From positions 236,024 to 300,023 of the forward strand of contig MU008190.1 of NCBI GenBank assembly GCA_010909165.1: DNA of 64,000 bases, written 5' to 3'. Below the pieces are notes generated by a model. The model was not told the origin of the DNA, did no database searches, and saw only the letters and a list, made by a program, of their open reading frames with translations. Each line of letters opens with the position of its first letter. Positions within the stretch are counted from its first letter, which is position 1. A program made the translations under genes and the position numbers. Source of the stretch: Anthoceros angustus (taxonomy: Eukaryota; Plantae; Anthocerotophyta). Below are positions 1-29,096 of the stretch, piece after piece.

Positions 1-1504
1 ATCCCCGGTATTCCCATTGTGATGTTAAGGAACTCGTCAGTATATGCTGCAATCGTCCCATGCTGCGTCAACTTAGCCAAGCGGTCTCGCGCCAACCTGG
101 AAGACTCCCGTGGTGTAAATTGGTTTCTGAGGGCTGACACCAACTGATCAAGAGTGACAATTGGAGGGGTGATGCCTTCTCGATTGAGTTGTCTCCGGCG
201 TTGCCACCACAGACGTGCTGTTCCTTCGAGGAATGTTACATTCTGACTACACATAGAGGGTACAAAGGACAACTCGAGATCTTGCTCAACACAGAAAACC
301 CGGTTTTCAAATGTAGCGGTCTCGTGACCCTCAAAAGGTTTGGGTTTAGGAGGTTTTGCGATGTGGGTCGCAGACCCTCTCGATGTCAGTATACCTTGGA
401 TTGCTTTATTCAACCAAGGCATACCTAGTATGCCATCACAACCGACATGCGTTTTGTAACAACAAAAGTGCGGTTTTCTACAAGCGGAATGTCGGCAATG
501 ACACCTTGGCTGCTCCATCAGTGTGTCCATCCGCATAATACAGGTCCTCCTTCACCTACAAGAGACACAATTTTGAGTGGCAAAAGGAAATCATTTGTGG
601 CCGGTCGATTAAAAACTAGCAACCTTGTTATTGATCAAAGCATGGACACGCAACAAATTTGATTTCAATACTCCTAGCGAGGATACCACGGTTACCATAC
701 GTGTTGTGCAACATCTTTATCTGGTACGGAGATGGAGTCTCCTGTAGCATCTTCAAGAGTTAACGTTTGCTTCTTTGTCTAGCTCTGTTCGGTTCTTTGC
801 GTCCTCGTCCTTTGCCCATTGCGGCATTCATTTGCCCTATGGCCAAATCGGCCACATGAAAAGCAGCGTCCTTGAAAGCGGGTTGCGCCCAACTCCATTA
901 GCCTCGGACATTGTTCCACGATGAGTCACCGTATTTGGAGCGGTTGTCCGGAAATCTCGCCCGACGTTGTGGTACCCATGGTCCCATAAAATATGTGCAC
1001 TGTGCATCCATTCGTTACGCCACGATGACATCAGTAATGAAGTCATATCGCTCTTGTTTCAACTTCTCCTGGTAACCCTCGGCGTAGTCCCCGTGCGTCA
1101 ATCATCTCCTCCTCTGTGATCCCGGTATTCCCATTGTGATGTTAAGGAACTCGTCGATATATCTTTGCAATCGTCCCATCTTTGCGTCAACTTAGCCAGC
1201 GGTCTCGCGCCAACTGGAAGACTCGTGGTGTAAATTGGTTTCGGTGACACCAAGCGATCAAGAGTGACAATTGGAGGGTGATGCCTTCTCGATTAAGTTG
1301 TCTCGGCGTTGCCACCAGACGTCTTGTTCCTTCGAGGAATGTTACATTCTGACTACATAGAAATGTACAAAGGACAACTCGAGATCTTGCTCAACACAGA
1401 AAACCGGTTTTCAAATGTAGCGGTCGTGACCCTCAAAAGGTTTGGGTTTAGGAGGTTTTGCGGTACACAGTGAGACCCTCTCGTGTCCGAGTATACCTTG
1501 GATT
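1..1504. repeat. Direct duplication of gag segment: 1-402 matches 1119-1504
   Basis: Near-identical sequence from atcccc/atccc-ggtattcccattgtgatg to agtataccttggatt. The second copy is about 16 bp shorter, mostly through 1-bp deletions. Confidence 0.92.
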
Positions 1505-2894
1505 CTTTGCTTGTGATGCCTCATGCGCGCCGCCCGCACGTTGGAACTTCATTTCTTAATTCCTCCATCTGTTGATGTTGGAGTTGTTGATCTTGAAGCA
1601 TCCTTACCGTATTCAAAATGTGGTCGTGGGCTCGATCTCCAAGTGCTCCATATTTGGTTCAATTGCTCCATTCGCACTTCTCGGTTTCCACCTCCTCGAG
1701 ATACCCACACCCTAACTAATCGTTCGGCCAACTCTTGTTTGTGTTGTTCCCTCGCCGCTTGGTGTCATTGTGCCTCTCTGCGGGCTTGTTGTACCGCTTG
1801 TACTCGGACCAGGTTCCCTGCCCTTGCAACCAAGTCCTGTTCCTCCACCGATGCTGTAGGAATCCTCGCCTGTGGGTCAAAAAGATAGCATTCAGCGTTG
1901 TGCTCCTCAAAGAAGCGCACAATTGTGGGCACGTCCTGGGTGCCCGCAGATCGAAACCACGCCTCGGCTCCGCGTGAGGTGGTAGCGAAAAGCTTCCCCA
2001 ATTCCAACTGTGCGAGATTCCAAGCTAGCTTTTGGCCGATTGTCCACTCCTCCGACAACCGCAATCCTTTTTGGAATAATACCTCTATCACCAACCACCT
2101 TACAGGCGGTCCCTAATCTTGGCCGCGAGAGGCGATGGTCCGGTCTATTTTCTCTGCGTCGGGATTGTGATTTTGCCCAGCTATCCGTGCTTCATCTGCT
2201 TGGGAATTTCTATATCATATTGCGGACTAGCACATATGGGTCTCTCACCATCTACTATGACGTAATCAACCTTGCAAAGCTATCACGAAGCTTATTTGGA
2301 GGTCTATCGTAGTCTTCTAACAACACTTCTCCGATGGCTCTTGGCTTCCATGATGTCCGTTGCGCCTTCAAGGCGAGACCCAATGCCGATTCAAGTTGAC
2401 ACAACAGCGATAAGCTCCCGTTGTCTAAGAGTCCATGGGCGCGCTCGATCGGTCGTTACTCGCAGGCATAGCTCAGACATCAACAATGCCCACATGAAAA
2501 TACGCCCACGATAGATTTTGCCCAACCTGAGCAACTTCTCGACATAACGGGCGGAACATCTGAACTGGCTGCTTGTGAGGACTAGAAACCAAATCTGGTG
2601 TCTTCTTATCTCGGAAAAAGCACTCCCGTCCTGGCTGGCTAGCGTCGGGGCTATCGACAACACCCGCTCCCTGAGGTTCCGATCTATCCCCAACTGCCGA
2701 CCAGGTTGCATTTGCCACCACGCTTCGCCTCGTGTCAGGCTTCCAAGTCCTATTGAGCTTTCCCAGCTGAGGGGGGGTTTTCCATGGCTAGGAGAGGGTG
2801 TATACAACACCTATCCGATCCTCCACACCCTTTCCTGCCATAGGAAACTTCACGATCACTCGTGAGTCATCAAGCGCCACTCTCAAGTGGTCAA

Positions 2895-2906
2895 GGCTCG
2901 ATACCA
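2895..2906 (-). promoter_or_regulatory. Primer binding site, iMet-tRNA-like (TGGTATCGAGCC)
   Basis: Reverse complement of ggctcgatacca, 3 bp inside the LTR end. Differs from canonical TGGTATCAGAGC by lacking one A. Confidence 0.75.
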
Positions 2907-2909
2907 AAA

Positions 2910-3088
2910 TGTAATGGCAGGAAAGCTGCCCCTCCGAGCTCGGGGCGTGTATTTAACATCCCAGGACTGTTACTCTAAACTTAGCATATGACTCACTACG
3001 GTGAACTGTACTTCCGATCCTATCCGCACCGTACCTTTTATATGTGTCCTGTATATGTATCCTATACATGTAATATTATATCATTACA
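2910..3088 (-). mobile_element. Putative 5' LTR (179 bp) bounded by TGTAATG...CATTACA inverted termini
   Basis: The plus strand has tgtaatg at 2910 and cattaca ending at 3088. The PBS abuts the inner edge, and the outer edge interrupts a LINE ORF. Confidence 0.75.
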
Positions 3089-3670
3089 CGAGCGCTTACA
3101 AGCAATGTGAGCGCGGAGAAAGGAAGATTGAACCCTTTCCACCTTAGCCCAAGAAAAAGGGGAAAGATCCGGGCCCCAAATTTCAGCGCCATACAAGGCG
3201 GAGGGAATTACCATAGTGTTGAACAGCTGCTTTCGAAGATTGATATCCTGAAGATTCATCCTATATAAAGAACAGCACAAAGCACAGACAGAGCCCATCC
3301 TGTTGGTAGCGCGGGAGGAGGCAGAGGAGGTTTAGTTAAATTTAGGACCGAAAATAATGATACCGAGATAAGTATAGGATCGGACCATCTCCACCTCATG
3401 ACCATCATAATAAAATTTGCAATCACCCTTGTAATCCCAGTTAAATTTAGGATCGAAAATAATGATACTGAGATAAGTATAGGATCGGACCATCTCCACC
3501 TCATGACCATCAGAATAAAATTTGCAATCACCCTTGTAATCCCAGTTAAATTTAGGATCGAAAATAATGATACCGAGATAAGTATAGGATCGGACCATCT
3601 CCACCTCATACCTCATGACCATCATAATAAAATTTGCAATCACCCTTGTAATCCGAGTATTGAACAGCAT
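3089..3670 (-). mobile_element. Non-LTR retrotransposon (LINE, RTE/CR1-like) reverse-transcriptase C-terminal fragment
   Basis: VRSYTYLGIIIF matches the RT YLG motif. KQLFNTMVIPSALYGAEIWG matches the conserved LINE thumb-region pattern L-x3-V-x-P-x2-L-Y-G-x-E-x-W. Frame is broken and cut by the LTR at 3088. Confidence 0.75.
3334..3652. repeat. 105-bp tandem repeat, about 3 copies, inside the LINE fragment
   Basis: ttaaatttagga recurs at 3336, 3441 and 3546. The unit encodes 35 aa (EVEMVRSYTYLGIIIFDPKFNWDYKGDCKFYSDGH). Confidence 0.92.
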
Positions 3671-4679
3671 AATCTAAACTGACCACTCGACCTAAGCTGC
3701 ACCATGTGACATCTTTTATTAGCTTCTCTCACTTTGTTTGGTTTTTCCCCACTCCCGCTACGTACTGATGATAGCTCATAGCCTCTGGTTTCTGGTGGAG
3801 GACCTGGAGGGATTTTCTGAGCCTCGTGTGGACTTGGAATCATACTTACCACTTGGACGTGGCGTCTTTGGACCGGGAGCCCGGGACATATCTCTGTGCA
3901 AGACTGATTCCGGGAATCAGATGTACCTCTGGAGCATACCTTTCTTAATTGCAACAGATGGGACTCGACGTTGGCTCAGGTCGACTGGTTGTCTTTGCGC
4001 CAACACTCTGAAAGGTTATCGTCGCTCACGGAAAACGGAGTGTCACCTTCACCGCAACGTATTTGTCCGGAAGTTGGTGAGTGTCATTCCAAGAGGCTGT
4101 CTCTATCCGCAAACAAAATCATGTGGGGAAGACCTATCTCAGAGCTATACAGAAAAGGCAAGAATTTTGATAAGCTAAGGACGATGGGTCGTGGCTTCGT
4201 ACAAAGGGTAGATTCCGTGTAGAATGTCCAGCACCATGTCTCTGATTACTCTGGGAAGGGGATTCCAGCACTTGCTTGCCCGCATCGGTCGGCCCCAGCC
4301 GCTTTGTAAGGGCGCGCCCGTTTCCGAAGAGAGAGACCTCGAGGCGCGAGACCTTCTTTCAGGATTCAGTCTCTCCTGCTGCACATGCCCCACACACCTT
4401 CTGGCTGGAGGTTCCAAGCTACAGTCGCCTCCTGACATTAGTTTCACAGCAAAGGAAGACCTCGTGAGTTTGACCACATGTGGTGAGAACGATTCACGTT
4501 CGACGACTCACGAGGCCCTGATGCTTATGTTGCTGGAGAACATACATACACACACGGTGTCACAGTACAGTATCGACGATTCCGGGATACTGCCAAGAGC
4601 TCGTGATGGGTAGATCGGGACAGAGTGACCTTGTTCTTTAGCCGCAGTCCAATGGCACGAGTGAATCTCTAGAGGGTTG

Positions 4680-11100: not shown

Positions 11101-13047
11101 GAGGCTGGAGGCTGGAGGCTGGAACCTGACGAAACCTGGATGCTGGGCCGCAGATCGCTCGCGCGACCAACATTCTGGCTGGCTGGGGCTTCGCTGCCTG
11201 GCCTGCCCAGAGCCCAGAGCCCAGAGCCCGGAGCCCAGAGCCGGCTGCCGGGCCTGGCGAGCGAGAGGCCGTGGGCAGGAATAATAACGGAACGGGCATG
11301 GATAACGGAACGGCGAGCCGGGGCACGGGGCGCGGGGCGCGGGGCCCGGGGCCCGGGATCCGGGGCCGAGGCTGAATGAGGGAATGAGGCTGGCCATATC
11401 CTGTTGCCAGGACGACGGCGCATGATGAGCGTGTAATTTGATGTGGGCTGTGTGCTGGTGGGCCCCGGACCCTGATTTCCAAGCGCGTGGGTTTCTATTC
11501 TGGCTCACGCCACGGTGCGCAATGATTTTTTAAGTCCCTTGGCGGGCCACAAAATGCAGAAAATGAAAAGCGAGGGCAAAAGGCAAGGCTGCACGGCTGC
11601 ACCCGAACCTCCCTGCGTCGTGCCCCACCGCCAGGCGAGCTTTCCTCGCCTCCCGCCTCCCGCCTCGGCTCCCCTTCCCTTCTCCTTTCTGCTTTCTCCA
11701 TGCTCCATTCTCCACTCTCCTTTCTCCACTCTCCTTTCTCCTTTCTCCTTTCTCCAGTCTCCATTTTCCATGATCATGAGCGCGCGCGACCAAGATTTGT
11801 GCGCTTTTGCTCTCCACCCAATGACCCACATGCATACATATATATACATATGTACATACATGCATCTGCAGGCTGCAGGCTGCAGGCCCCAGGCCCCAGG
11901 CCCCAGCCCCCAGGCTCCAGCCTCCAGGCCAGTATGTGCAACCGCAAGTACATCCCACATAATAACATGGGCATGACACGAGCGGTGGTGGTGGTGGTGG
12001 TGGTGGTAGTCGTGGTGGTGGTGGTGGTGGTGCTATGTGCATGGGGCCAGGAGGTATGGAGGGCGAAATGATGATGCATGGCACAATGATGACGGCCCCT
12101 CCTGGTAGGCTGGTACCCTGGTCTCTGGTATCTGGTATGCGCGCGCGGAAAGGGTAACAAACCGGTCGGTTAAGTCTGTTCCGCCGGGCCATCAGCCATC
12201 AGCGCTTCATCATGAGGGCGCGCGGGGGCCGGGGGCCAGGGAGACCGAGACGAGCGGTCAATGCAAGCAAGGCCACATCTTGGGCTCAGGCTCAGGCCGA
12301 GCGGCCTTTGGCTTTCCCTCCAGCCTGCCAAGCCAAGGCACTCGTGCGAACGCGGGCTTCGCTTGGCTCGCATTTGTCGCACGCTGTCTTTCCCCCTTCC
12401 CTCCCCGCTCCCCGCTCCCGCTCCCGGTTCCGGTTCCGGTTCCGGTCCCCCGTCAACATCGCCCACCTACCGCCGCGTTTAACTTTATCCGCGTCTTAAC
12501 TTCCCCCCTTAATGCCGCGCCATGGATGCATGTATGTACATCCGTGTACCGGACACGCGACACGCTCCGCGCATACCCATCATCATCATGACATGACATG
12601 GCATGGCATGGCATCGCGTCGCATTGCATTCAAGGGACTGCATCGGCACACGCCATGCCCATGTCCATTTTGCACAGAAGCGAGGAAGCGAGGGAGCCAG
12701 GAAGCCAGGAAGCCAGGAAGCGAGGTGCGCGAGCGAGCGGTGGTGTGGGATATGGATCCCTCTAAATCAGCAGGAAGCAGATGCAAATCGCGAGATGGTG
12801 CCCCCCTGCCCCTCATTCCAATCACACTTACACGCCGCGCAAGGGCACTGACGAGACGAGCCTGCTGCGCCTGCGTAGGCGGTCGGCCTTGGCCTGCATT
12901 ATGGGCTGCGGCAGTCCGACTAGAGAGACCAGAGCAGCAGCGGGGCCGGGGCCGGAGCCGGAGCCGGGGCGGAGGAGAGGTCAAGTCGCATTCACTCTAC
13001 CGCAGTCTGTGCCAACCGGATTGGATGTGGTGGAAGGAGCAGAGCAA

Positions 13048-13078
<31 letters not shown>

Positions 13079-13975
13079 CGCAGGGAGAAGGGGGCCCGGG
13101 CCCCTGGCCCCGGCGCCCAGGGCACACCCAGACTGTATGTACCACACAGCGTCCAGAGGCGAGAGCAGAGCAGAGCATCCAGCGGTGGCAGGACCGAGTA
13201 CCGCGACAGCTGCATCCACGGAACGGATCCCGGGCCCCTAAATCTGGAGCTGCCTGCACAAGCGCAATTACCACATCCTGTACCAGGAATTCAAAAAACT
13301 GGGAGCGACCTTGTCTCTGCGACGCAATTACACTTCCCCTCACACTTCCCGTACCAGTACCGACACAAGGCGGGGCTCAGCTCTGCTCGACTACTCTTGC
13401 CTACTGCACTCTACTCTACTGCGCAAAGCCCGAAAACATACATACATACATACATACATCCATACATAGGACCCAAGAACTGAAGAAATCCACGGCAAGG
13501 CATGGCCGACGGCTGCCGCTGCTCGCCCACTGACAGGACAGGCTACAGCCCAGCCAGTAGGAGTACTAGTGGTCAAGTCCCCTTCACCACACACAACAGG
13601 CAGACAGACCAGAAGAACAAAGCAGACAGCAGCACAGAGCAGCAGAGCAGCAGAGCTGCAGAGCAGCAGAGCACGGTCTTCCAGCTATAAATGTCAGCTC
13701 AAGTGTGCGAACCAACATGTGGACCACTGCCGAGGCCTCCCAACCGGCCCGCCTCAGCCCCAGCTCCAGCCCCAGCCCCAGCCCCGCCTTCGCCCCGCCC
13801 CAGCCCCTGGCCGCGGCCCCGGCCCCGCCCTATTTTGTCTTCTTTTCCCATTTTCGAACTCTCTTCCCTTCTCATTCTACCGCCTCCGGCTAGGCTACCC
13901 TCTGCCCCTGCCTTCCATGCTTTCTTCGTATAGCCATGGCGTCCCAAACGACTCGAGTGCAAACAGGAAATACTA
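8200..13975. repeat. GC-rich, microsatellite-dense non-coding stretch ((GT)n, (GGT)n, (GCAGA)n, (CAGGAG)n, (CATA)n, (CCTGGC)n etc.)
   Basis: For example (GT)n about 9037-9066, (TGTAGC)n about 9891-9913, (GGT)n 11984-12032, (CATA)n about 13436-13466. ORFs here are low-complexity translations of SSRs. Confidence 0.8.
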
Positions 13976-14703
13976 ATGCATGCCAATATACCTAAGTTAG
14001 TTTTAATATACATCTATATTCATCTTTTAAAAATAATAGATAAACTAACTTTAAAACAATATAGGTTACTAAAATCATTATCATCCTTCTTTTCTTAGAT
14101 AGAAAAATAAGCTTTGTTTTTTTTTTACAAAATTGCTATGAGAAAAGATTGTGATCATTGTTTTGAATTCAAGTTCATTTCAAAAACAAAACAAGGCTTA
14201 CATTTATCAAAGAACTTGATTTTAATTTAATAAATTATCAAAATTAATATATTATATTATATTGATGTACTACTCACACTCATTACTTTCAACTTAGATC
14301 ACTTCAAACTAGAATATGATTGAGTGCTATCTTCACAAGCTTCTTATGCAAGGCTTAAGTTGAAATTCATAGAGTCATATCACCATCAGTAAGCATTACT
14401 CATCAGAACAAGCCAACCTTCATCGCAATTGAACATAGAGGATGCAACATCATGCTTTAGCATAGAAACTCATCAATGTTTAATTGTTTTTTGTGGGTTT
14501 CAATAAAACGATACAACCTAATTACGACATATTTTGATAACAATGTGCTCTACCAAGTATACTAGTTTTAGGTGATGAGACTACATTCAACAACTCGCAA
14601 CAAACTTACATTGAACTATACAACATTCTTATTCAATCTTATGATATGTGGAATCCTTCCAAGTCAACAACGACAGGGAGGATAATACCCACACCGAGCT
14701 ATC

Positions 14704-16452
14704 ATGGGATGTGCTCCTTCAACTTTTGTCACTCCCTTCTTTCCTTTTCAATCTTCAAATTTAAGCAAAAACAAAGCATGGGCAACTCAAGATACTCGCA
14801 AATACATGACCACAACGACTAATTGTATAAGAACCCAAAACATGTGTTGTCAACTAGATTCGCATCGAACCATTGATGCTTTAGCACTCAAGCCAAATGT
14901 CGCCATCGTCGGTTTACGGGCCACTTGGATAACACCATTTCTGCTTGCCATGTGTCACCCTTGTGATGTTTTAGTGGCAAAATATAACATCATTAACCAA
15001 TTTCAAGAAAGTAAAATTGTTGCTCTAGTGAATTTACAAGTTCCTGGTGAACATTCATTATGCAGGACTTCACATGTCAAACGAGATAGTGGTTTTACTT
15101 ACACACCAGAGTTGTTCATGCAAAGCAATATCCAATATTACAACTTTCCATGGATGAAGGAGAAAACACGCAACCTAGATTACACTTTGTCCATTATCCA
15201 AATTGTGGATTCTAGGGTTTGCAATGGAGGGAAGGTGGCAATTCATTCTTATTCAGGTCGCCGACGTAGTGTGTTGATTATTGCATGTTACTTAGTATTT
15301 TCTCAAAAATGTAGTGCCCTTGAGGCTGTGGATTTGGTGCACAAGACAAAACCTAAGTTTATAACTTCAAGTCAGCTGAAACATGTCAGGTTGTTTGAAA
15401 AGTATTTGTCAAACTTGAGGTATGTCTTTGAGCAGCCCTCAAAGCCTCTCAAAATTCATAAAAAGAATAAATTCCAATCACTAGAAAGTTTCATGGAAAA
15501 ACAAAGAAAAATTTTACATGGAGAAGAAATTCGGATTTTCTATAACACACCTAAAATCTTACATTGTGTGATAAAAGAATCAGTACAAAGGGCAAGCCAA
15601 TATAAAAAAAATAGAGAGAAATTGGCACGAGCTTTTCTCCATGAGCTTGAGTATGAGGTTGGAAGCGAAGTAAACCCTATTCTTGAGGAAGATGCCGCTA
15701 TAATCCTGAGAATAAAACGTAATATGGATAGTGGTGATTATAGTGGTTTGCAACATCTTGAGATACATAATCTTTTAAGACTAATCCTTGACTGGATCTC
15801 TTTGCTAAGACAACCAATTGTTCCTGACTGGATTCTCACTACTGCATTGAGCAAAGGAGAGATATTGAGCTCCATTACCGAGCTTCAAAAATGTACTAAA
15901 TCTGCATTTGCAACCTTTCAAATTTTGGCTTGTTGGATGTATCAAATTGTGCCTAGTAAAGCACGTCTCACTCGAAGACTTTATGGGGGACTTGCTCATA
16001 TTCTCCTAAGGCACACAGGCTTACATAATTTGCCAGAAAGTAAGATCATCCCTATTATTCAAAAAAGGCCTTCTAAAATGAAAGAAAGATTTTCCATTAT
16101 ATCAAAGGTAACACAAGGTATCACTAGGTTCAAACCAACCATTCTAGAAGTAGAATTTGGTCTACTATTGGAGGCAACAGCTCGCCACTGGTGTAAATTG
16201 GGTACGTCAAGCATACCAAGTTCTAAAGCAAGCACTAGTGGACTAGCTGCTCTATCATCGGCCCCAAACACATGCAATCACGGACCAAAAATTTATTTAT
16301 CAAAAACACTTAATGTATCATATATTATCTATGTAGAACCTTTGTTGTTAAATCGGCCTAGCTTAGATGTTGAGCCATTAAATGAAGAGTTGATTAAAAA
16401 CTTGGAGAGAACTTCTTCCATAGGCAATAAAAAAAGCTCATTATGGCCATAG
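14704..16452 (+). CDS. PTPDC1: PTPDC1-like protein tyrosine phosphatase domain protein, predicted catalytically dead (C to S), intronless, 582 aa
   Basis: ITPFLLAMCHP..KYNIINQF..NLQVPGEH..CR..DSGFTYTPELFMQ..YYNFPW..GKVAIHSYSGRRRSVLIIACYLVF parallels human PTPDC1 (ITDNILAMARP..NLQRPGEHASCG..ESGFTYLPEAFM..GKVAIHCHAGLGRTGVLIACYLVF). LDWISLLRQPIV resembles the PTPDC1 C-terminal WLEQLKEPV block. Confidence 0.85.
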   Translation: MGCAPSTFVTPFFPFQSSNLSKNKAWATQDTRKYMTTTTNCIRTQNMCCQLDSHRTIDALALKPNVAIVGLRATWITPFLLAMCHPCDVLVAKYNIINQFQESKIVALVNLQVPGEHSLCRTSHVKRDSGFTYTPELFMQSNIQYYNFPWMKEKTRNLDYTLSIIQIVDSRVCNGGKVAIHSYSGRRRSVLIIACYLVFSQKCSALEAVDLVHKTKPKFITSSQLKHVRLFEKYLSNLRYVFEQPSKPLKIHKKNKFQSLESFMEKQRKILHGEEIRIFYNTPKILHCVIKESVQRASQYKKNREKLARAFLHELEYEVGSEVNPILEEDAAIILRIKRNMDSGDYSGLQHLEIHNLLRLILDWISLLRQPIVPDWILTTALSKGEILSSITELQKCTKSAFATFQILACWMYQIVPSKARLTRRLYGGLAHILLRHTGLHNLPESKIIPIIQKRPSKMKERFSIISKVTQGITRFKPTILEVEFGLLLEATARHWCKLGTSSIPSSKASTSGLAALSSAPNTCNHGPKIYLSKTLNVSYIIYVEPLLLNRPSLDVEPLNEELIKNLERTSSIGNKKSSLWP

Positions 16453-19400
16453 CGCTGTAGAGCAGAGATATTTTAATCAAATAATTATTATTATAGGTAC
16501 TTATTGCCAAAGAGTATTTTGAATACATTAATAGTACATCGTTCTACTAAATTAATAGTATTATGTTTGCATGTTAAAACAAATGGTTCCACGTTTTAGG
16601 TCATAGACACACATACATGGGAGGCCATCGGGTACATTGACGGCAACCTCTAGCCTCTCAACCTCACGCTAGCGCCGACAACATCCACCAATTGATATTT
16701 TTTGCTACCGTATATCCGACCGTGGCTGACATCCAAGACAACAGTTGAGAGAATTTAGTGCACACGCTTGGATACCATGTACCACGCTGCGCTTCACCTA
16801 CCGAGTTGGTCAATGTTTGATGTTTGTTTCACGACTCTCTTTTTATGTTCGTCCTTTGGTTTTCAAACTTATTTCTTACATATTTGATTCAAGACTCACT
16901 TATGTTTCGAATATGACCTCATAGGTCACTTCATTGAAAGAGGAGAGATGAGGTGAACCTATCTTACTTCTATTCGTCCTTTAACTTATTTATGTTTGTC
17001 CTTTGCTTTTTGTACTCAAGGACACTCGTGGTATAGTTAGAGCTTACGTGTACTTGTCCTATGGTTGCTTACTTATACTTGTCTTATGGTTTTTGAATTA
17101 TGTGGTATAAGGAACTCACTCATGACTTTTATTTTCTTTGGGAGTCTTCGTTCGAACTCACTTGTAAGGTCGTTTATTTGTAAGAGCTTTGTAAGTTTTA
17201 GTGGAAAGCTTTGAAAGTTGCTATTCTACTCATGAGAGCCTCGAGAGAAGAGTGGTTTATCTTGCATGGGAGAAGGGTAGGAAAAGGGGCCACTCAGGAA
17301 AGGCATTTTGTGTGAGGAAGTTAAGTTGTATTGGTTAATAATTAGGTGTTATCTTTTTGTTAAGTGGAGGGTTGCACCCCATGACCTGAAATGCACTAGG
17401 GAATTGGCGCGTCAACTTTGCAAAGATGCTGATGAGAGGAGGTGGCTGGAGGTGAAGCCCTCGGCCGAGGTGGAGGAGGAGGTGGATCCATTGGTGAGGA
17501 TCCTAAGTCCCTCTCCGGCTTGCCTTAGTCCCTATGGCGTGCAAGCCGGAGAGAGAGAGAGAGAGGAACGAGGAGAGTGTTGCTGTTGTGGGTTGCAGGC
17601 AGAGAGAGCCAAGTCCCAATGTCCAAAGCAGAGAGGTTACAACTTCCGGGAGGCGAGCAGATGCCGTTAAACTCTTCCATGCTCCACAGCCTGGAGGGAG
17701 AGCAGGAGCAGGAGCAGGAGCAGTGCGAGAGTGAGAGAGAGTGGAGTGACTAGAGTCCAGTTGCGCTGGACACGCAGCGAGAGCAGGCTCCACGTTGTTC
17801 AGTCCCCACCCTCCTCTCTCTCTTTCCCAAAGCTGGTCTGCTGCTACGGCTTGCTGCTAACAGCTTCTTCCTTCCCTCGCTGCCCCAGAGAAAGCCCAAG
17901 CCCGGTGCCCAGTCCCCGGGCGCCTCGTGGACGGAGCCCCCTCCTGCTGCACACACTCTGGGCTGCGCGCGGACGGGACGGGACGGGTCAGGTGCGTGAC
18001 CTCGGTTAGCTTGCTGCTGCTTTCACACCGCCTCACCCCTGCTGCCTGCTTCCGCTTCGTACTTGTGGCCTACCACTTACCACTTCCCACTACACTACTT
18101 GGCTGGCTTTGCCCTCTGCCTCCTCCCCGGAGTCTAATCGGGTAGCTCCGCAGAGCAAATCAGGCAGACCCACCGCCTGTTTGTCCCAGCTCCAGCACCC
18201 AGCCTCCTTCCTTGCCTTCCCTCCCCCTCCTCTTTCCGGTTTCAAATCTTTGCTGGCTGCCTCTGCAGCAGCAGCTGCTGCTGCACCTGCACCTGCACCT
18301 GAACCTGCACCTGTCCCTGCCCCTGCCCCTGCCTCTACCCCTACCCCTACCCCTGCCCCTGCCCCTGCCCCGCCCCTGCCCCTGCCCCTGCGCGCTCGCA
18401 TCTGCATCTGCCCTCCGCTCCGCCCAGGAAGCTCCCGGAGCTGCCACTAATTCGGAGCCCAGGCGGAGGCCCAGGCGGGAGATCCCACATTTGTGCTCGC
18501 CGGGGCGGCCTCTGCCCACCAGCTCGCTGCTTCGCTTCGCTTGGCTTCTTGCTGGTACCACCACCCTCAACTGCCCTGCTTGCCCCGCTTCTTGGCCCGA
18601 TCCCGGATCCGATGGCTAATTGCCACCCGCCCTCTATGCCGCTGCAATTCATGGCTCCGCATCCTTAGTTCAATTTCCTCCTCCCTCCGCGCATGCGCAC
18701 TCCCTAGATCTCTCTCTCCGCCGGGCTCTGCTCCTGCCACTGCCCGCTCTTTCCTCTTCTTGGCCTGCCTGCCTTGCCTGGCCTGGCCTTGCATGGTGGG
18801 CGTGCGGGGTTTGGCTGCACCCGGGATTGCGATTCTCCTGCGCGACTGCTGTTAGCGGACTGGACAGACTGTGTTTCTGCAAATCTTTATGCTCAGCCTC
18901 TTTGCTTTCGTCTGGCTCGCACCCTCAGTCTATCTGTGCCCGTGAGTGTGTGTGTGTCTCTGACGTTTGCAGCTTCTTGTTTTCCTTTCCTCCCCTTTCC
19001 TGTGTGGTGGGTTCCGGTGAAGGCCCATCCACCGCATGCCCTGCAAGCCTCCAGGCCTGGCCTGGATAGCAGCGTAGGGTTTGAGCGCCTTCTTGGAGCG
19101 GACTTCCGTGAGTGGCATGGAAATTTTTTTTGGGATGTGCTGCGGTATTTTTAGTTGCTGGGGAAAGCTGTTCGAAGCGGACGGGGAAGCGGAGCAAGGG
19201 CTTTTGTGCTCCCACATTTTTGTGAAAGAATTGGATTGCTACAGGCCTGCGCTTGTCAATCCTTTGTGACTGTGACTGCACTCCGCTCACCGCTGCCTCC
19301 GGATTCCAACTCCTGCTCTCCAGATTGGGCCTGCCCAGTTCTGTCCAGCCCAGCCCAGCCCAGGGCGGTGATGCTGCTGCTGCTGCTCTGCTCTTTCTTG

Positions 19401-20309
19401 CCGCCTCCAGGAGGCTCTTGAATTTGGTCGGGCCGAGCCAGTCGGGTTCTTGACAGGATTGGGGCTGTGCGGAATAGATTGTCGCAGAGCCGAGCAGAAT
19501 TTGGGTCGGGTGGGGCGTCGAATGCTTGTACCCAGCGCGAGTGTACAGGCCAGGTCGGCGGCTTGTGTCGGGGACTCCCCCGGCACCTCAGAGCATGAGA
19601 GATCCCTGGGCACCCGTGAAGCTGCGGGCTTGAGCGAGCGGCAAGAAGCGGAATCTGCGTGGTGCGTTGCCACCGGATGTTCCCCCCGCTGCCAGGGCCC
19701 TGGCTCCACCCGCTGGGAATTGCTGCTGGCCACAAGCGCCGGAGACGATGTTGGTTCGCCTCCTGCGGAATCTGAACTCGGGCGCTTTGGAGATAAGATT
19801 TTGGGACTTCCCGCACGTGCAGCAAGTTCACTAGCTGTGGGTATTCTCCTGTCGCCGCCTCTGCCTCTGCTGGAGTATTCTTGTTGCCAAGGCAGGCAGG
19901 GGATTTAGTAGTCTTTTCTTTGCAGACAGACAGACATCACCACCACCGTCGTCGTCGTCTGCCACCAGCAGAAGCAGCCTGTGTGGGGCAGGCCAGGGGC
20001 TATCTCAACTGCCACCAATGTTGTAAAGAATCGGACGAGTAAGTCGAGTCCCTTGGAACCACTCCAAGGGTTTGCCATCTTCTGGTGGGTCGAAGAAACG
20101 GAAGGATTGGGCGTAGGGTTGGCTGGTGGACAAGCATCTCAGCGCTCTGGAGACCCAAGACCTGGACCTCGGTGAAGAAGTGTTCTTCCAGGTGTAGGTG
20201 AAATGGAGGACAGGTCTGTAAAGTAGGCAGAGTCTGCTACAGGCCACAGGCACAGGAAGAGCCACAGGGAGGCTACAAAGCCTAGGAATGCTGGTGCCCT
20301 TCACCTGCT

Positions 20310-21412
20310 ATGGCTGAGTCTAGCCAGGCGCTGGTGCCAGTCCCAGGCCCCTTGGAGGAGTTGGCACCTCTGTCGGGCGAGGTGTCGGGAGGGGACAAGG
20401 GGCGGGAGTACCGTAAAGGCAACTGGACTCTCCAAGAAACCATGATACTCATATCGGCCAAGAAGCTGGACGACGAGCGCAGGCTCAAGGGAGGTGACAA
20501 GGAGAAGAGCAAGACCGCCGAATTCCGGTGGAAGTGGGTGGAAAACTACTGCTGGAAGCACGACTGTCAACGAAGCCAGAACCAGTGCAACGACAAGTGG
20601 GACAACCTGCTCAGGGACTACAAGAAAGTGAGGGACCACGAATCCAAGCTGCTGCCGGGCCAGAAATCCTACTGGAACCTAGAGAAGCACGAAAGGAAGG
20701 AAAGGTCTCTGCCTTCCAACCTCTCCCCTCAGGTCTACGAGGCTCTGCACGACATCATCGACAAACGCCACAACACACCCAAGCTCACGCATTCCGGTGG
20801 AACTGCTGGGACCACTTCCGTTCCCATGCAACCCCTTCCCCCACCACCGGAGCACCAGCAACCCGCTTCTGGTGAGTTCCCTCTCACACGCCTCACTTCC
20901 TTCGTCCCTGGTGTGTCTTTTTGTTTCGTTTTTTCCTTTTTCTCGTGTCCCAGCCATTGTTGGGGTTGTGAAGCTGAGCAGAGGGCATGTTCTGTACAGG
21001 AAACAACCGGGAATGTCTGCCTGCCTTGGAAGACGGGATTTCCCTGTTGCTGTCTCACATCAATGCTGTACCATGGCTTGCAGATGGGGATGACAGCTCT
21101 GAGAATGATGAGAGTGGCGGAGTGCAACCATCACCGGCCAAGAAGCGGAAGTATACCCCTTCTTCCGAGGGCATTGGCCCTGCCCTGTCCAAGAGCACCT
21201 CAGAGTTGTCCCAAACTTTGTTAGCCTGTGAGGAGATGAGGGAGAAACGGCACAACGACATCCTAGCGGTAAAACAGGAAAAAGTCCGTATCGCTCAAGA
21301 AAGGAAAGAGATCAAGCGGCAGGGCTTTACCGGGCTCATCGAGGCAATGAACAATCTTGCCCATGCCATTCGGGTACTGGCCTCTGATAAGGCAGGCGCA
21401 GGTCATGGTTGA
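20310..21412 (+). CDS. Trihelix (Myb/SANT-like) transcription factor, SH4-like clade; exons 20310-20871, 21084-21412 (296 aa)
   Basis: YRKGNWTLQETMILISAKKLDDERR...WKWVENYCWKHDCQRSQNQCNDKWDNLLRDYKKVRDHE, plus a C-terminal coiled coil. Phase-1 GT-AG intron; 891 nt total. Confidence 0.92.
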
Positions 21413-25572: not shown

Positions 25573-28500
25573 CTAGGCAATGAGAGGTGGAGGTGGGGGA
25601 GTGGAACCATGGGATGCTTTGGGTGGTGCCGTCCAGTGACGTCCAGGAGGACGAGCTCGAGGAGGTTCTTGGGGTGGAGGAGTCCACTGACGTGGTGGAG
25701 GAATCCTGTGATGTCGGGGAGGACTAGCGTGAGGGGGATGTGAGGGTGGTGGAGACTCTTGTTGAGGTGGCGGGGTGAGTGGCGGGGGAGGGGAGAGCTT
25801 GGAGGTTCTGCATGTGGTGGAGGAGGCGGGGGTGAGGACACAGGACCTGGTGCAGGCAGGTGACATTGACTGGTGGAGGTGGCGGGGGTGGTGGAGGAGA
25901 AGAAACAGGAGGTTGTGTTGGAGGCTCCACGACTGGTGGAGGTGGTGGCAGGGGAGAAGAAACAGGAGGTTGTGTTGGAGGCTCCACGACTGGTGGAGGT
26001 GGTGGCGGGGAGAAGAGACAGGAGGCGGAGGTGGTGGTGGTGGTGAGGTAGAGTTGGATGGCGGGGGTGGTGGTGGGGAGAAGAGACAGGAGGGGTGGTG
26101 GTGGATGGCGGTCGTGTTCGGGTGGAGGTGCAGGAGGGTAGAGATAGATGGCGGGGGTGGTGGGGGAGAAGAGACAGGAGGAGGTGGTGGTGGTGGTGAA
26201 TGGTGGTGTTTTGGTGGAGGTGCAGGAGGGGTAGAGATAGATGGCGGAGGTGGTGGGGGAGAAGAGACAGGAGGAGGGGGTGCTGGTGGTGAATGGTGGT
26301 GGTTTGGTGGAGGTGCAGGAGGGGTAGAGATGGATGGCGGAGGTGGTGGGGGAGGAGGATGACGATAGTGCTTGGGTGGTGGAGTAGGAGGTTGGACTTG
26401 AGGAGTAGGCACCGGAGGTGTCAGAGGCACCGGTGGAGGAGGAGACGGAGACTGAGGTTGAGGAGAGGGTGGTGTGATGGTCGGAGGTGGCGGAGGTGGC
26501 GGAGGTGACGGGGGAGAGGAAACAGGAACGGGCGGCGGAGGTGGTGGTGAAAGCGGGGCGACAGGGCCAGGTGCTGGTGGGGAAGAATTGGTTGGAGGAG
26601 CCGGGGGAAAAAAGGGAGTGGGAGTGGGAGTGGGAGCCGGAGTGGGAGAAATGGGAGTAGGGGCAGGAGCAGGTGGAGAAACAGGGGGAGCAGGGGGAGA
26701 CACAGGGGGAGCAGGAGGAGAAACAGGGGGAGACGCAGGAGACACGGGCGGAGCAGGAGGAGATGGGTTTGAAGGAGAAGGCGGGACAACGGGAGGAGGG
26801 GCAGGAGCAGGAGAAGTAGGTCCTGGAGCTGGGGCTGGAGCGTTTGGTGCTGGACCTGAAGCTGGCACACTAGGGTATGGAACTGGGGTGGGAGCACTTG
26901 GGGCTGGAGTGGGAGCACTTGGGGCTGGAGTGGGAGCACTTGGGGCTGGAGTGGGAGCATAGGGGGATGGAGCAGGAACTGGCGCGGGAGAGCCAACAGG
27001 TGGAACATAAATCGGAGGCCCTCTTGGAGTATGATGGTGAGGAGGGGGAGGTGGGGGATTAACAGGAGGTGGAGGAGGTGGAGATGGTGGTGGAGGTGGT
27101 GGTGGGGGAGGAGGTGGAGATTGCACCGGCGGAGGAGGTGATTTGTGTCCATGCTGCGGAGATTTAGGGAGGAGAGAGAACTGGGACTGGAGGTGGAGGA
27201 GAAACTGGTGGGGTGGAGGAGGGAAACAACAGGCAGTGGTGGTGGTGGAGAAAGGACAGGTGGTGGTGGTGGTGGAGAAAGAACAGGCAGTGGTGGTGGT
27301 GGTGGTGGTGGTGGTGGTGGTGGTGGTGGTGGTGGAGGAGAAAGAACAGGCGGTGGTGGTGGTGGTGGAGGGAAAGAACAGGTGGAGGTGGTGGTGGAGG
27401 TGAAGGAACAGGTGGTGGGGGAGGAGGAGAGTAAACCGGAGGAGGTGGTGGAGGAGGAGAGTAAACGGGTGGTGGTGGTGGTGGAGGAGGAGAGTAGACG
27501 GGTGGTGGTGGTGGAGGAGGAGGAGGAGAGTAAACAGGAGGCGGCGGTGGGGGAGAGTAAACAGGAGGTGGACGAGGAGGAGATGGGGACTTGGGACTAG
27601 GAGGGGATGGCGGGGAAGGAGGAGCCGGAGGCGGAGTGTTGTAGAATTTCTGGCATGTCTTCTCAGACTTCTGGTCTTCAGAGCCTGGTATGCAATTACC
27701 CTGAAAAACAATGATGCCGCTGACAGCAAGAGGATCGCACTCCGAGCTGGCTCCGTTGAAGAAGTTGTTGGACAGCGTCAGGTTCTGGATGTTGGGCAAG
27801 GTGCACACATCCGCTCCCACAGTCCCGAACAGCTTATTCCCAGCCACATTCAACACCTCCAAGCTGGTCATGTTGCCTATGGAATCCGGCAGAGCGCTCT
27901 GCAACTTGTTCTTGCTGACGTCGAACACCGTCACATTCTGCAAGTTCCCGATGGAGTCGGGGATGTCTCCGACGATCTTGTTGTTGAGGAACAGGATCTG
28001 GTTGAGCGTTCTGGACATGTTCCCGATGGTGTCGGGAATGCCTCCCTTCAGCTTGTTGTTGGCCAGCACCAGCACGGACACCGGCGAGCTGCCCAGCGAG
28101 TCTGGAATCCCCCCCTTGAAGTGGTTGTTGTTCAGAAACAACGCATCCAGGTTCTTCTCGAAGATCTCGGGAGGAATGTCGCCCTTGAACTTATTAAACC
28201 TGATGTCCAGAAAGATGAGGCTGGGAAGCTCCAAGACCACCAGGGGGAATTTCCCCGACAGCTGATTGTTACTCACATCCAGCTCGTACAGCAGCTTCAG
28301 ATGCTTGAAACTCTCCGGCAGCGTCCCCGTGAAGTTGTTGGTGTTGAGATGCAACAGCGCCAGATCCGTGAGCAGGCCAAGCTCCTCCACCAAGCGTCCC
28401 GCCAGCAGCGCATGGTTCAGGTCGATCCCCGCCACCACATCAATAGACGGATCATCCAGCGCAGCCTCGCAGAAAACTCCGTCGTAGCTGCACACGTCCC

Positions 28501-29096
28501 TGCCCACCCAGCTCCCTGTGATGTTCAAAGGATCCGCCGTGATCGCCTTCTTCCATGCCTGCAGCGCAATGTAGGCATACAGCAACCTCCTGCTCTGCCT
28601 GTGATGCCCCACCCCAGGCGGGTGATGCCCCACGCCCGGCGGATGGTGTCCTACACCTGGTGGATGGTGGCCTACGCCTGGAGGATGATGCCCCACCCCA
28701 GGCGGGTGATGCCCCCATCCAGGAGGACCGCTTACCCCTACAACTCTAGCCTTTACACTACCTTCTACACCTGAGAAATCTGCAGCATCCCAACACATGC
28801 AGACAAACAAAACACGAAGCAACGATGGATCAGCACACGAACAACACAAAAAGAAAATCAAGACCGACCCACACCGAGATCCGTATGCAAGAAACAGCGC
28901 AAGAACCGGAGCCCAAGGCAACGCTATGCGACAGCCTCCCCCTCGGGGGAAGACAAGAAACCCACAAAAACCCACATCGCCAAAGAAGCGAGCGTCTCCA
29001 AAGCACGAGCTGGGTACCTTGCGCAGCAGCAAGAAAGGAAAGCGAGCTGCAGATGAGCAAGAGCACCACGGCCAGAGCGCCCCGCTGGGGCGTCAT
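25573..29096 (-). CDS. LRX: Leucine-rich repeat extensin (LRX): signal-peptide exon 29096-29017, exon 2 from 28779; apparent frameshifts in the Pro-rich tail
   Basis: Signal peptide MTPQRGALAVVLLLICSSLSFLAAAQ. LRX N-cap AYIALQAWKKAITADP..VCSYDGVFC, then LRRs and a Cys-rich linker. SPPPP/VYSPPPP extensin and AP-rich blocks follow. Confidence 0.9.
28601..28726 (-). repeat. Six 21-bp units encoding PPG[W/V]GHH in the LRX N-terminus
   Basis: Units start at 28601, 28622, 28643, 28664, 28685 and 28706. Differences between units are mostly synonymous. Confidence 0.92.

Follow-up and report, generated by a model that had tools for sequence, protein, structure and literature searches.

A PTPDC1 orthologue with a degenerate phosphatase active site and a RhoGAP-like C-terminal domain in the hornwort Anthoceros angustus

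Can a phosphatase gene lose its catalytic residues and still be retained by selection? This question is raised by a PTPDC1-like gene in a 64,000-nucleotide stretch of Anthoceros angustus DNA (NCBI GenBank assembly GCA_010909165.1, contig MU008190.1, positions 236,024 to 300,023 of the forward strand), which we refer to as the window and whose own coordinates are used throughout. A preliminary description made from the sequence had called the product a dually acylated pseudophosphatase and a candidate protein of the sperm flagellum or centriole. We find the gene best explained as a selectively maintained PTPDC1 orthologue that is no longer a phosphatase and would act as a lipid-anchored, non-catalytic adaptor, a reading to which we assign a probability of about 0.62. 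Re-reading of all six frames confirmed the intact open reading frame (ORF) described previously:

14704..16452, + strand: PTPDC1 orthologue, complete single-exon gene; 582-codon ORF plus stop, no internal stop

Each of the five other frames contains 25-49 stops across 14704-16452, and at 37% GC (stop probability 6.8% per random codon) the chance of 582 open codons is ~1.3e-18.

Orthology and active site of the window protein

The window protein matches Pfam DSPc (1.8e-9, 37.9 bits against a gathering cut-off of 33.5; residues 139-230) within a dual-specificity phosphatase (DSP) domain of the protein tyrosine phosphatase (PTP) fold:

14896..15438, + strand: dual-specificity/PTP-fold domain, catalytically degenerate; aa 65-245; Pfam DSPc and Foldseek

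An AlphaFold model of the full protein had a mean predicted local distance difference test score (pLDDT) of 58.6, with ~75 in the DSP domain, for which Foldseek returned template modelling (TM) scores of 0.70-0.77 to small cysteine-based PTPs, PRL and KAP; CDC14 was also matched (E~1e-4). Membership of CDC14 was rejected because there is no DSPn domain, the sole DSPn signal (E 0.098) lying inside the DSPc region, and the N-terminal 64 residues are predicted to be disordered. Its closest relatives were a 655 aa protein from a Logan assembly (P0001; 51-57% identity), then PTPDC1 of Calypogeia and Marchantia, a Selaginella fragment and animal PTPDC1. When 1.84 billion representative sequences were searched exhaustively with a hidden Markov model (HMM), 398 family members passed E <= 1e-30, and ~30 of the 150 listed matches could be named; these added Sphagnum magellanicum, Selaginella and Diphasiastrum (for the latter two, both halves of a split gene model each) and, beyond plants, fish, coral, a spider, Rhodelphis, Ancoracysta, Pelomyxa and marine protist transcriptomes. 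The full-length protein, a profile of four plant sequences and the isolated C-terminal domain were also used in word-indexed searches, which gave 11, 11 and 1 proteins, respectively; such searches are useless for claims of absence because they missed Sphagnum and the split lycophyte models recovered by the exhaustive search. The window protein itself was absent from the 15-billion-protein collection.

In a maximum-likelihood tree the seven land-plant sequences (window, P0001, the liverworts, Sphagnum, Selaginella and Diphasiastrum) formed one clade with support of 98/98, whose sister was Rhodelphis (96/95). The window protein and P0001 were paired at 100/100 on the longest internal land-plant branch (0.78), and the pair joined the moss and liverworts rather than the lycophytes, weakly (81/84). 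P0001 is also the positional orthologue, at locus L001, and its gene is likewise a single uninterrupted ORF. Directly after the DSP domain the family has a further hallmark in common:

15499..15555, + strand: family-wide motif RQxxxLHGxExRxxxxxPK; aa 266-284, start of the C-terminal domain

Residues Q267, L271, G273, E275 and P283 of this motif were invariant in a nine-sequence alignment; among 28 sequences Q267 remained invariant and G273, E275, P283 and K284 were at least 90% conserved. An Atlas feature search with the C-terminal domain alone also led to PTPDC1 clusters (score 0.84), a result that we treat as a lead only. Judged by the named matches, the nesting in the tree, synteny and the post-DSP motif with its C-terminal domain, the window gene is a true PTPDC1 orthologue, which bears out the earlier label PTPDC1-like.

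The two catalytic loops of the DSP domain both depart from the family pattern:

15151..15159, + strand: general-acid loop W150-M151-K152; Lys in place of the family Asp
15244..15270, + strand: P-loop HSYSGRRRS, H181-S189; Cys182Ser, His183Tyr, Gly187Arg and Thr189Ser, with His181, Gly185 and Arg188 kept

The P-loop reading with Ser as the nucleophile, and the WMKEK reading of the general-acid region (W150-M-K152-E-K, 15151-15165), had both been given in the preliminary description and were reproduced here. The Ser182 codon is TCT (15247-15249), the arginine of the CX5R signature (R188) is kept, and the P-loop departs at six of ten residues from the consensus of the family, [VI]HCH[AS]G[LY]GRTG. 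For an active-site census, the DSP domains of ~152 non-redundant family members were aligned and scored in window numbering:

His181: family 152/152; no exceptions
Cys182: family 150/152; Ser in the window protein and in the spider Caerostris darwini
His183: family 151/152; Tyr in the window protein
Gly185: family 152/152; no exceptions
Gly187: family 149/151; Arg in the window protein, Gln in P0001
Arg188: family 151/151; no exceptions
Thr189: family 149/151; Ser in the window protein, Pro in the spider
Asp152 (WxD loop): family 150/153; Lys in the window protein and P0001, the third exception (P0134) being an alignment gap

We also selected the 24 positions with at least 95% conservation among 147 non-plant family members, and counted the violations in each sequence:

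Window protein: 10/24 violated; R85H, G121R, D152K, C182S, H183Y, A184S, G187R, T189S, G190V, R213H
P0001: 7/24 violated; R85Q, D152K, A184S, G187Q, G190C, R213C, Q224H
Other five land-plant sequences: 1-2 of 24 violated; A184S plant-wide
Background: median 0, 95th percentile 4%, maximum 17%

The window protein is the only family member with 10 of the 24 positions lost and one of two among ~152 with a Ser nucleophile. The other is a Caerostris darwini protein (P0114, GIY03409.1; IHSHTGLGRPG, Asp kept), which may represent either an independent pseudophosphatase conversion or an annotation or sequence error.

The case for a pseudophosphatase is broader than one residue because 10 of the 24 invariant positions have been lost, and the replacement of Cys, Asp and four more P-loop positions supports the earlier pseudophosphatase call, as far as activity can be read from residues. 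Retention of the P-loop Arg (R188) and the backbone Gly (G185) is as in STYX-type pseudophosphatases; P-loop geometry may differ, since G187 is Arg. A surviving enzyme would have to use Ser182 as its nucleophile or turn over another substrate, such as a phosphoinositide or a small phospho-compound, with Glu153 replacing the Asp. His181, Gly185 and Arg188 would suit such an enzyme, as would the acidic E153 one position after the lost Asp. However, Cys-to-Ser is the classical inactive substrate-trapping change in the PTP fold and the Ser-bearing MK-STYX is inactive (PMC2873733); His183, Gly187, Thr189 and Gly190, near-invariant in ~150 relatives, have also changed; and P0001, with its loop WRKTS, has no acidic residue near the position of the lost Asp. 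Continued catalysis is therefore very improbable, and we retain the reading of the DSP domain as non-catalytic.

Whether the Ser is common to orthologues had been posed as a check on this call; it proved private to the window lineage, as P0001 retains the Cys while already lacking the general-acid Asp. Five of the 24 positions are violated in the window protein and P0001 alike, and at four of these the two have taken different residues. On account of this overlap and of the branch of 0.78 leading to the pair, catalytic constraint was most likely released in their common ancestor, with Cys-to-Ser following later in the window lineage only. The active site was thus probably dismantled stepwise in one lineage, Asp and other residues first and Cys later, and such stepwise loss with the rest of the protein kept suggests that PTPDC1 has a substantial function independent of catalysis.

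We also noted irregularities in the annotation of other plant family members. In the lycophytes the PTPDC1 orthologue is annotated as separate N-terminal (DSP) and C-terminal (RhoGAP-like) models, P0020 and P0007 in Selaginella and P0029 and P0031 in Diphasiastrum; the Diphasiastrum loci (O6H91_04G126100 and 04G126300) are neighbours and look like a split gene model, and the Selaginella models lie on different scaffolds. Marchantia Mp6g13710 has four annotated isoforms (P0003-P0006), of which P0003 lacks ~60 residues of the linker and C-terminal domain start that are present in P0004. Isoforms P0004-P0006 have no precomputed Pfam domain, and their coverage in the DSP alignment is partial and without the P-loop Cys; alternative splicing in Marchantia may therefore yield phosphatase-less forms.

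The RhoGAP-like domain and the N-terminal acylation motif

The C-terminal half of the protein holds two further segments:

15466..16203, + strand: RhoGAP/BH-like helical domain, apparently without an arginine finger; aa 255-500
16204..16449, + strand: C-terminal tail with the plant-conserved motif EPLLxNRPSL; aa 501-582, predicted disordered

Residues 256-582 of the window protein gave no Pfam match. Three orthologues carried the same sub-threshold match to Pfam RhoGAP (E 0.03-0.14). In 14 of 28 members RhoGAP was the only recurrent Pfam match. When a profile of 28 family C-terminal domains (A3) was searched against the PDB, it matched MgcRacGAP (1.1e-6) and the BH domain of PI3K p85 (3.8e-4), then ARHGAP11A, OCRL, ARHGAP12/20/35 and p190; 23 of the 24 PDB matches at E <= 10 were RhoGAP/BH, the remaining one being glutamyl-tRNA reductase (E 1.4). 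Folded alone with the family alignment in AlphaFold2, the domain gave a pLDDT of 86.5 and a predicted TM score (pTM) of 0.85, and the first 47 PDB matches of this model in Foldseek were all RhoGAP/BH. VIA-align returned Z 12.3-15.8 over 155-186 residues at a root mean square deviation of 2.8-4.0 Å for 43 RhoGAP/BH entries, the next unrelated fold having Z 4.3, and an Atlas fold search gave RhoGAP (PF00620) in 10/10 rows. By profile comparison and predicted structure, the C-terminal half of the whole PTPDC1 family has a RhoGAP/BH fold. The domain, at residues ~255-500, was missed by the preliminary description; Lai et al. drew the C-terminal region of PTPDC1 as a 'helical solenoid' (PMC3069013), and we found no literature linking PTPDC1 with RhoGAP. 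Conservation in the protein peaks in this domain (74% identity between the window protein and P0001, 66% between the liverwort pair). In the tail, P546, R551, S553, L554 and E557 were invariant in the four full-length plant sequences.

At sequence level, none of the 28 family members has a G-x-x-R-x-S-G finger loop or a conserved Arg there, and in the predicted structure a long extra helix (aa 301-320) occupies the expected position of the arginine finger. In the profile alignment Arg stands where the M-x-x-x-N-L-A motif has its Asn, with RRL of LTRRLYGGLA opposite MgcRacGAP ANLAKVFGP. With no finger loop and with Arg in the place of that Asn, the domain would be a BH-type, RhoGAP-like module that probably lacks GAP activity; an active RhoGAP was rejected because neither finger nor catalytic Asn could be recognised in the alignments. 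A RhoGAP/BH fold probably without GAP activity suggests in turn that it binds a GTPase or other partner, in an architecture parallel to that of OCRL.

The N-terminus carries a putative lipidation signal followed by a variable linker:

14704..14721, + strand: MGCAPS, predicted N-myristoylation (Gly2, Ser6) and palmitoylation (Cys3) motif; fits PROSITE PS00008
14722..14895, + strand: N-terminal linker, poorly conserved and predicted disordered; aa 7-64; pLDDT <50 for aa 1-64; 37% identity to P0001

The start MGCAPST matches PS00008 (G-{EDRKHPFYW}-x2-[STAGCN]-{P}) with Cys at position 3, and M1, G2 and S6 are invariant in the six available land-plant N-termini (window, P0001, Calypogeia, Marchantia, Selaginella and Diphasiastrum), which read MGCAPS (twice), MGLGLS, MGAGAS, MGIVLS and MGLCAS. 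The acylation motif of the preliminary description is thereby supported as a predicted signal; Cys3 is confined to the window protein and P0001, and Diphasiastrum has Cys4. Over the ~55 residues after the motif the four full-length plant orthologues have pairwise identities of 16-47%. At 14701-14727 the DNA shares 92.6% identity with L001, in contrast to the saturation of synonymous sites elsewhere, and MGCAPS is kept in three genomes: that of the window, that of P0001 and that of a further relative (organism B; see below). Among 151 representatives from outside plants, an MG start occurs in 27 and a match to the PS00008 pattern in 13; none of the animal PTPDC1 proteins examined has a start of this type. 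A non-land-plant member from a JGI metagenome, likely a protist (P0035, 545 aa), starts MGCSPS, and for this reason N-terminal acylation may be ancestral outside animals.

MGC dual acylation is a standard plasma-membrane signal of many non-ciliary proteins (Src-family kinases are named in PMC6678300), and for that reason the motif supports membrane anchoring more than a ciliary address. As the earlier account had stated, Gly2-myristoyl plus Cys3-palmitoyl is nonetheless known to direct proteins to flagella and cilia, the examples being calflagin, RP2 and the Lck/Fyn nlCTS (PMC6678300). The sequence of the window protein predicts lipidation at Gly2 and Cys3.

Probable maintenance of the gene and its possible role

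The gene lies in a pronounced compositional dip and has, on its downstream side, blocks of collinearity with the P0001 locus:

14000..17300, no strand assigned: low-GC island holding the PTPDC1 gene; 20-40% GC, flanks 55-67% GC
18040-18076, 19074-19181 and 19516-19610, + strand: three blocks beyond the gene, collinear with L001, the locus of P0001; blastn with L001 as query

GC content falls from ~60% to ~37% at the gene, and GC at third codon positions (GC3) is 0.32 against 0.50 in P0001, neighbouring window ORFs having ~0.6; the orthologous locus L001 has a similar but milder dip (1500-4500). The three blocks are 74-87% identical between L001 and the window, with order and strand preserved, and organism B (runs X2 and X3) carries a collinear copy at ~91% nucleotide identity over 14488-16493 with conserved flanks. 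As the gene is syntenic in L001 and collinear in organism B, it is old and vertically inherited. We found no long terminal repeats (LTRs), terminal inverted repeats (TIRs) or target-site repeats around the island and no Pfam domains in the ORFs flanking the gene. A transposon, a retrocopy or horizontal transfer as the source of the island was rejected given the lack of repeats, the synteny in two genomes and the nesting among land plants; ancient retroposition could explain the lack of introns common to the window gene and P0001. Microsatellite-like, GC-rich tracts (GGAGCA and GCCCCA hexamer runs) occur on both sides of the AT-rich island, at 12940-13100, 13750-13830 and 17690-17740.

These data bear on whether the Ser codon is genuine. 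A second read set (X1), whose contigs are ~99% identical to the window, spans 14811-15254 with mismatches only at 14941/14942; it agrees with TCT where a TGT at 15247 had been named as the observation that would overturn the pseudophosphatase call, and because it has no mismatch there the codon is not an isolated assembly error, X1 being possibly the same sample as the assembly and so not a fully independent confirmation. An error of sequencing or assembly at the Ser codon, or recent acquisition of the ORF from a foreign source, would be in keeping with the single G-to-C difference between TGT and TCT and with the drop in GC content. Against both stand the agreement of X1, five other P-loop changes and an Asp loss that do not depend on that base, collinearity in organism B, synteny in L001, nesting within land-plant PTPDC1 and the lack of repeat or transposable element (TE) boundaries, and we regard the chance of either as negligible.

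Between the window gene and P0001 the proportion of synonymous differences (pS) is 0.86, a value that is saturated and inflated by the compositional shift, and that of nonsynonymous differences (pN) has an overall value of 0.28, with 0.29 for the DSP domain and 0.17 for residues 341-500. With pN far below a saturated pS, the window gene is probably under purifying selection. With two liverworts as outgroup, the positions changed in one lineage only numbered 11 in the window protein and 8 in P0001 for the DSP domain, and 5 and 7 for the C-terminal domain; by this count the window lineage has not evolved faster than that of P0001.

The principal challenge to maintenance is that the gene is in decay, a PTPDC1 relic whose function is lost and which has not yet acquired a disabling mutation. 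The loss of 10 of 24 family-invariant positions and the drift of GC3 to 0.32 would accord with this, as would the finding that eight of nine differences between the window and organism B in the first 44 codons are nonsynonymous, which alone could mean relaxed constraint; this comparison covers codons 1-44 only, a segment of low conservation and predicted disorder across all orthologues, with MGCAPS unchanged. No transcript was found either: none of the listed runs holding the gene is recorded as RNA, and a possible RNA run (X6) gave no contig. On the other side, 582 codons have stayed open despite the stop probability given above, pN is 0.17-0.28 against a saturated pS, the C-terminal domain is still 74% identical across a long divergence, the rate of change does not exceed that of the Cys-bearing P0001, and MGCAPS persists in the three genomes. 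The losses fall mainly on catalytic residues; the fold core, the RhoGAP-like domain and the N-terminal motif have stayed, as one expects of a pseudoenzyme rather than a pseudogene. Decay is on this evidence improbable.

If the gene is instead maintained for a lipid-anchored adaptor, its parts may be assigned as follows. Catalysis would have been lost with the changes of Cys to Ser and Asp to Lys, of four further P-loop residues and of R85, G121 and R213. An N-terminal anchor of myristoyl Gly2 and palmitoyl Cys3 would tether the protein to a membrane. The dead DSP pocket, now very basic (SYSGRRR), might bind a phosphorylated protein or an anionic lipid head group without turnover, and the BH-like domain, by analogy with the non-GAP RhoGAP folds of OCRL and p85 BH, might bind a small GTPase or other partner. 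The protein could then serve as an adaptor or, in line with proposals for STYX-type proteins, compete for a phospho-ligand as a 'trap' and so shield or sequester it. The absence of activity, the lipidation, the ligand binding and the GTPase binding are all inferred.

Where such an adaptor would act is a separate matter. For the basal body or flagellar membrane of spermatozoids we give about even odds. The association of animal PTPDC1 with centrioles and cilia, on which the sperm proposal was founded, is borne out by the literature: Ptpdc1 knock-down by small interfering RNA (siRNA) lengthens cilia, and animal PTPDC1 is reported at centrosomes (PMC3069013). Among the ~30 named sequences of the 150 listed, PTPDC1 carriers all come from lineages with ciliated or flagellated stages, the plant ones being bryophytes and lycophytes only. 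A phylogenetic-profile and expression screen for plant spermatogenesis genes has been described by Koshimizu et al. (bioRxiv 10.1101/2021.07.25.453666), whose main text mentions no phosphatase. A functional, non-catalytic scaffold could equally be unrelated to sperm or cilia, as a plasma-membrane adaptor in, for example, vegetative ROP-GTPase or phosphoinositide signalling. The MGC start, being also the plasma-membrane signal of many non-ciliary proteins, is compatible with this, a RhoGAP-like domain would fit ROP signalling, and a gametic role draws no support from the runs examined. However, the named family members come from ciliated or flagellated lineages with no seed-plant protein among the ~30 nameable best matches, animal Ptpdc1 affects cilium length and the related CDC14 is co-inherited with flagella; we therefore think a role wholly outside cilia unlikely, though well short of negligible.

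Several points weigh against the maintained adaptor and its proposed setting. Besides the nonsynonymous differences from organism B and the lack of RNA evidence, the codon usage of the gene is strongly AT-shifted, which neither horizontal transfer nor a transposon accounts for. The lack of phosphatase activity is deduced from residues only, and the arginine finger is apparently missing on the strength of sequence alignment and predicted secondary structure, with no residue-level superposition. The ciliary link of PTPDC1 consists of one siRNA screen and one centrosome localisation, both in animals (PMC3069013), and the lack of a seed-plant protein applies to the ~30 nameable best matches, seed-plant genomes not having been searched.

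More generally, and tentatively, PTPDC1 might across eukaryotes combine a phosphatase with a non-catalytic, GTPase-binding RhoGAP/BH module, the enzyme half having been switched off in one bryophyte lineage, probably hornworts, and the conserved job being scaffolding at the basal body or flagellar membrane; this is a doubtful proposition at present. If it is true, the dead natural variant would offer a separation-of-function allele, provided by nature, for studying how PTPDC1 restricts the length of cilia. PTPDC1 is among the least understood Cys-based phosphatases, with one ciliary phenotype and a centrosomal localisation in the literature searched. Seed-free land plants carry clear PTPDC1 orthologues with a conserved N-myristoylation signal, which fits, and does not prove, the distribution of flagellar genes. 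PTPDC1, pseudophosphatases and MGC signals were known already; what is new is a naturally dead PTPDC1 with a traceable stepwise history and, for the family, the RhoGAP/BH domain and the conserved plant acylation signal. The scope is limited: pseudophosphatases as a class are common, and a role in sperm is a hypothesis.

Elsewhere in the window, a 304-codon ORF at 20310-21224 (+ strand) encodes a Myb/SANT-like DNA-binding domain (Myb_DNA-bind_4, E 5.8e-11) and could be a trihelix-type factor or a transposon-derived gene. A 622-codon ORF at 27164-29032 (- strand), in a region of 60% GC, encodes a leucine-rich repeat (LRR) protein with an LRRNT_2 domain and LRR_8/LRR_1 repeats, probably the ectodomain of a receptor-like kinase or a receptor-like protein, and the region of this ORF shows a strong GC skew (0.61 over 26001-28000).

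Comparison with known systems

The window protein has the layout of its family, a DSP domain followed by the RQxxxLHGxExR...PK motif and a helical C-terminal domain. It differs from the known PTPDC1 proteins in having lost the catalytic Cys, the Asp and several P-loop residues, in an MGC acylation motif that the animal proteins examined lack, and in being encoded by a single exon. In the literature searched we found no functional data on any plant PTPDC1 and no papers on Mp6g13710. CDC14 is the nearest large DSP family by both sequence and structure. It is co-inherited with flagella and absent from Arabidopsis (PMC3038932), a flagella-linked distribution like that proposed here for plant PTPDC1. 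Unlike CDC14 with its tandem DSPn and DSPc core, the window protein has one DSP domain after ~64 disordered residues.

Among pseudophosphatases the closest parallels are MK-STYX (STYXL1/DUSP24) and STYX, which likewise keep the DSP fold and the P-loop Arg, have the nucleophile replaced and act by binding (PMC2873733). The preliminary description held that a C-to-S substitution defines the STYX type, which is imprecise: Ser is true of MK-STYX, which also has Phe for the preceding His, whereas STYX itself has Gly at the nucleophile position (PMC2873733). MK-STYX is inactive until Cys and His are both restored (PMC2873733). Both belong to another DSP subfamily, MKP-like with a CH2/rhodanese domain, and while MK-STYX loses the His before the Cys, the window protein keeps His181, loses His183 after the nucleophile and has lost the general acid as well.

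At the N-terminus, calflagin, RP2 and Lck/Fyn have the same Met-Gly-Cys start with Ser/Thr at position 6; they are unrelated to the window protein, with only this short motif in common, and its own lipidation is predicted. INPP5B is listed among lipidated ciliary proteins (PMC6678300). Together with OCRL it has a 5-phosphatase in place of the Cys-based DSP of the window protein, in which Pfam recognised nothing, an ASH domain included, beyond the DSP domain. OCRL/INPP5B and the BH domain of PI3K p85 nevertheless resemble the C-terminal half of the window protein in using a RhoGAP fold without GAP machinery as a binding platform, and both were among the profile and structure matches. OCRL, in addition, pairs its RhoGAP-like domain with a phosphatase domain, as does the window protein.

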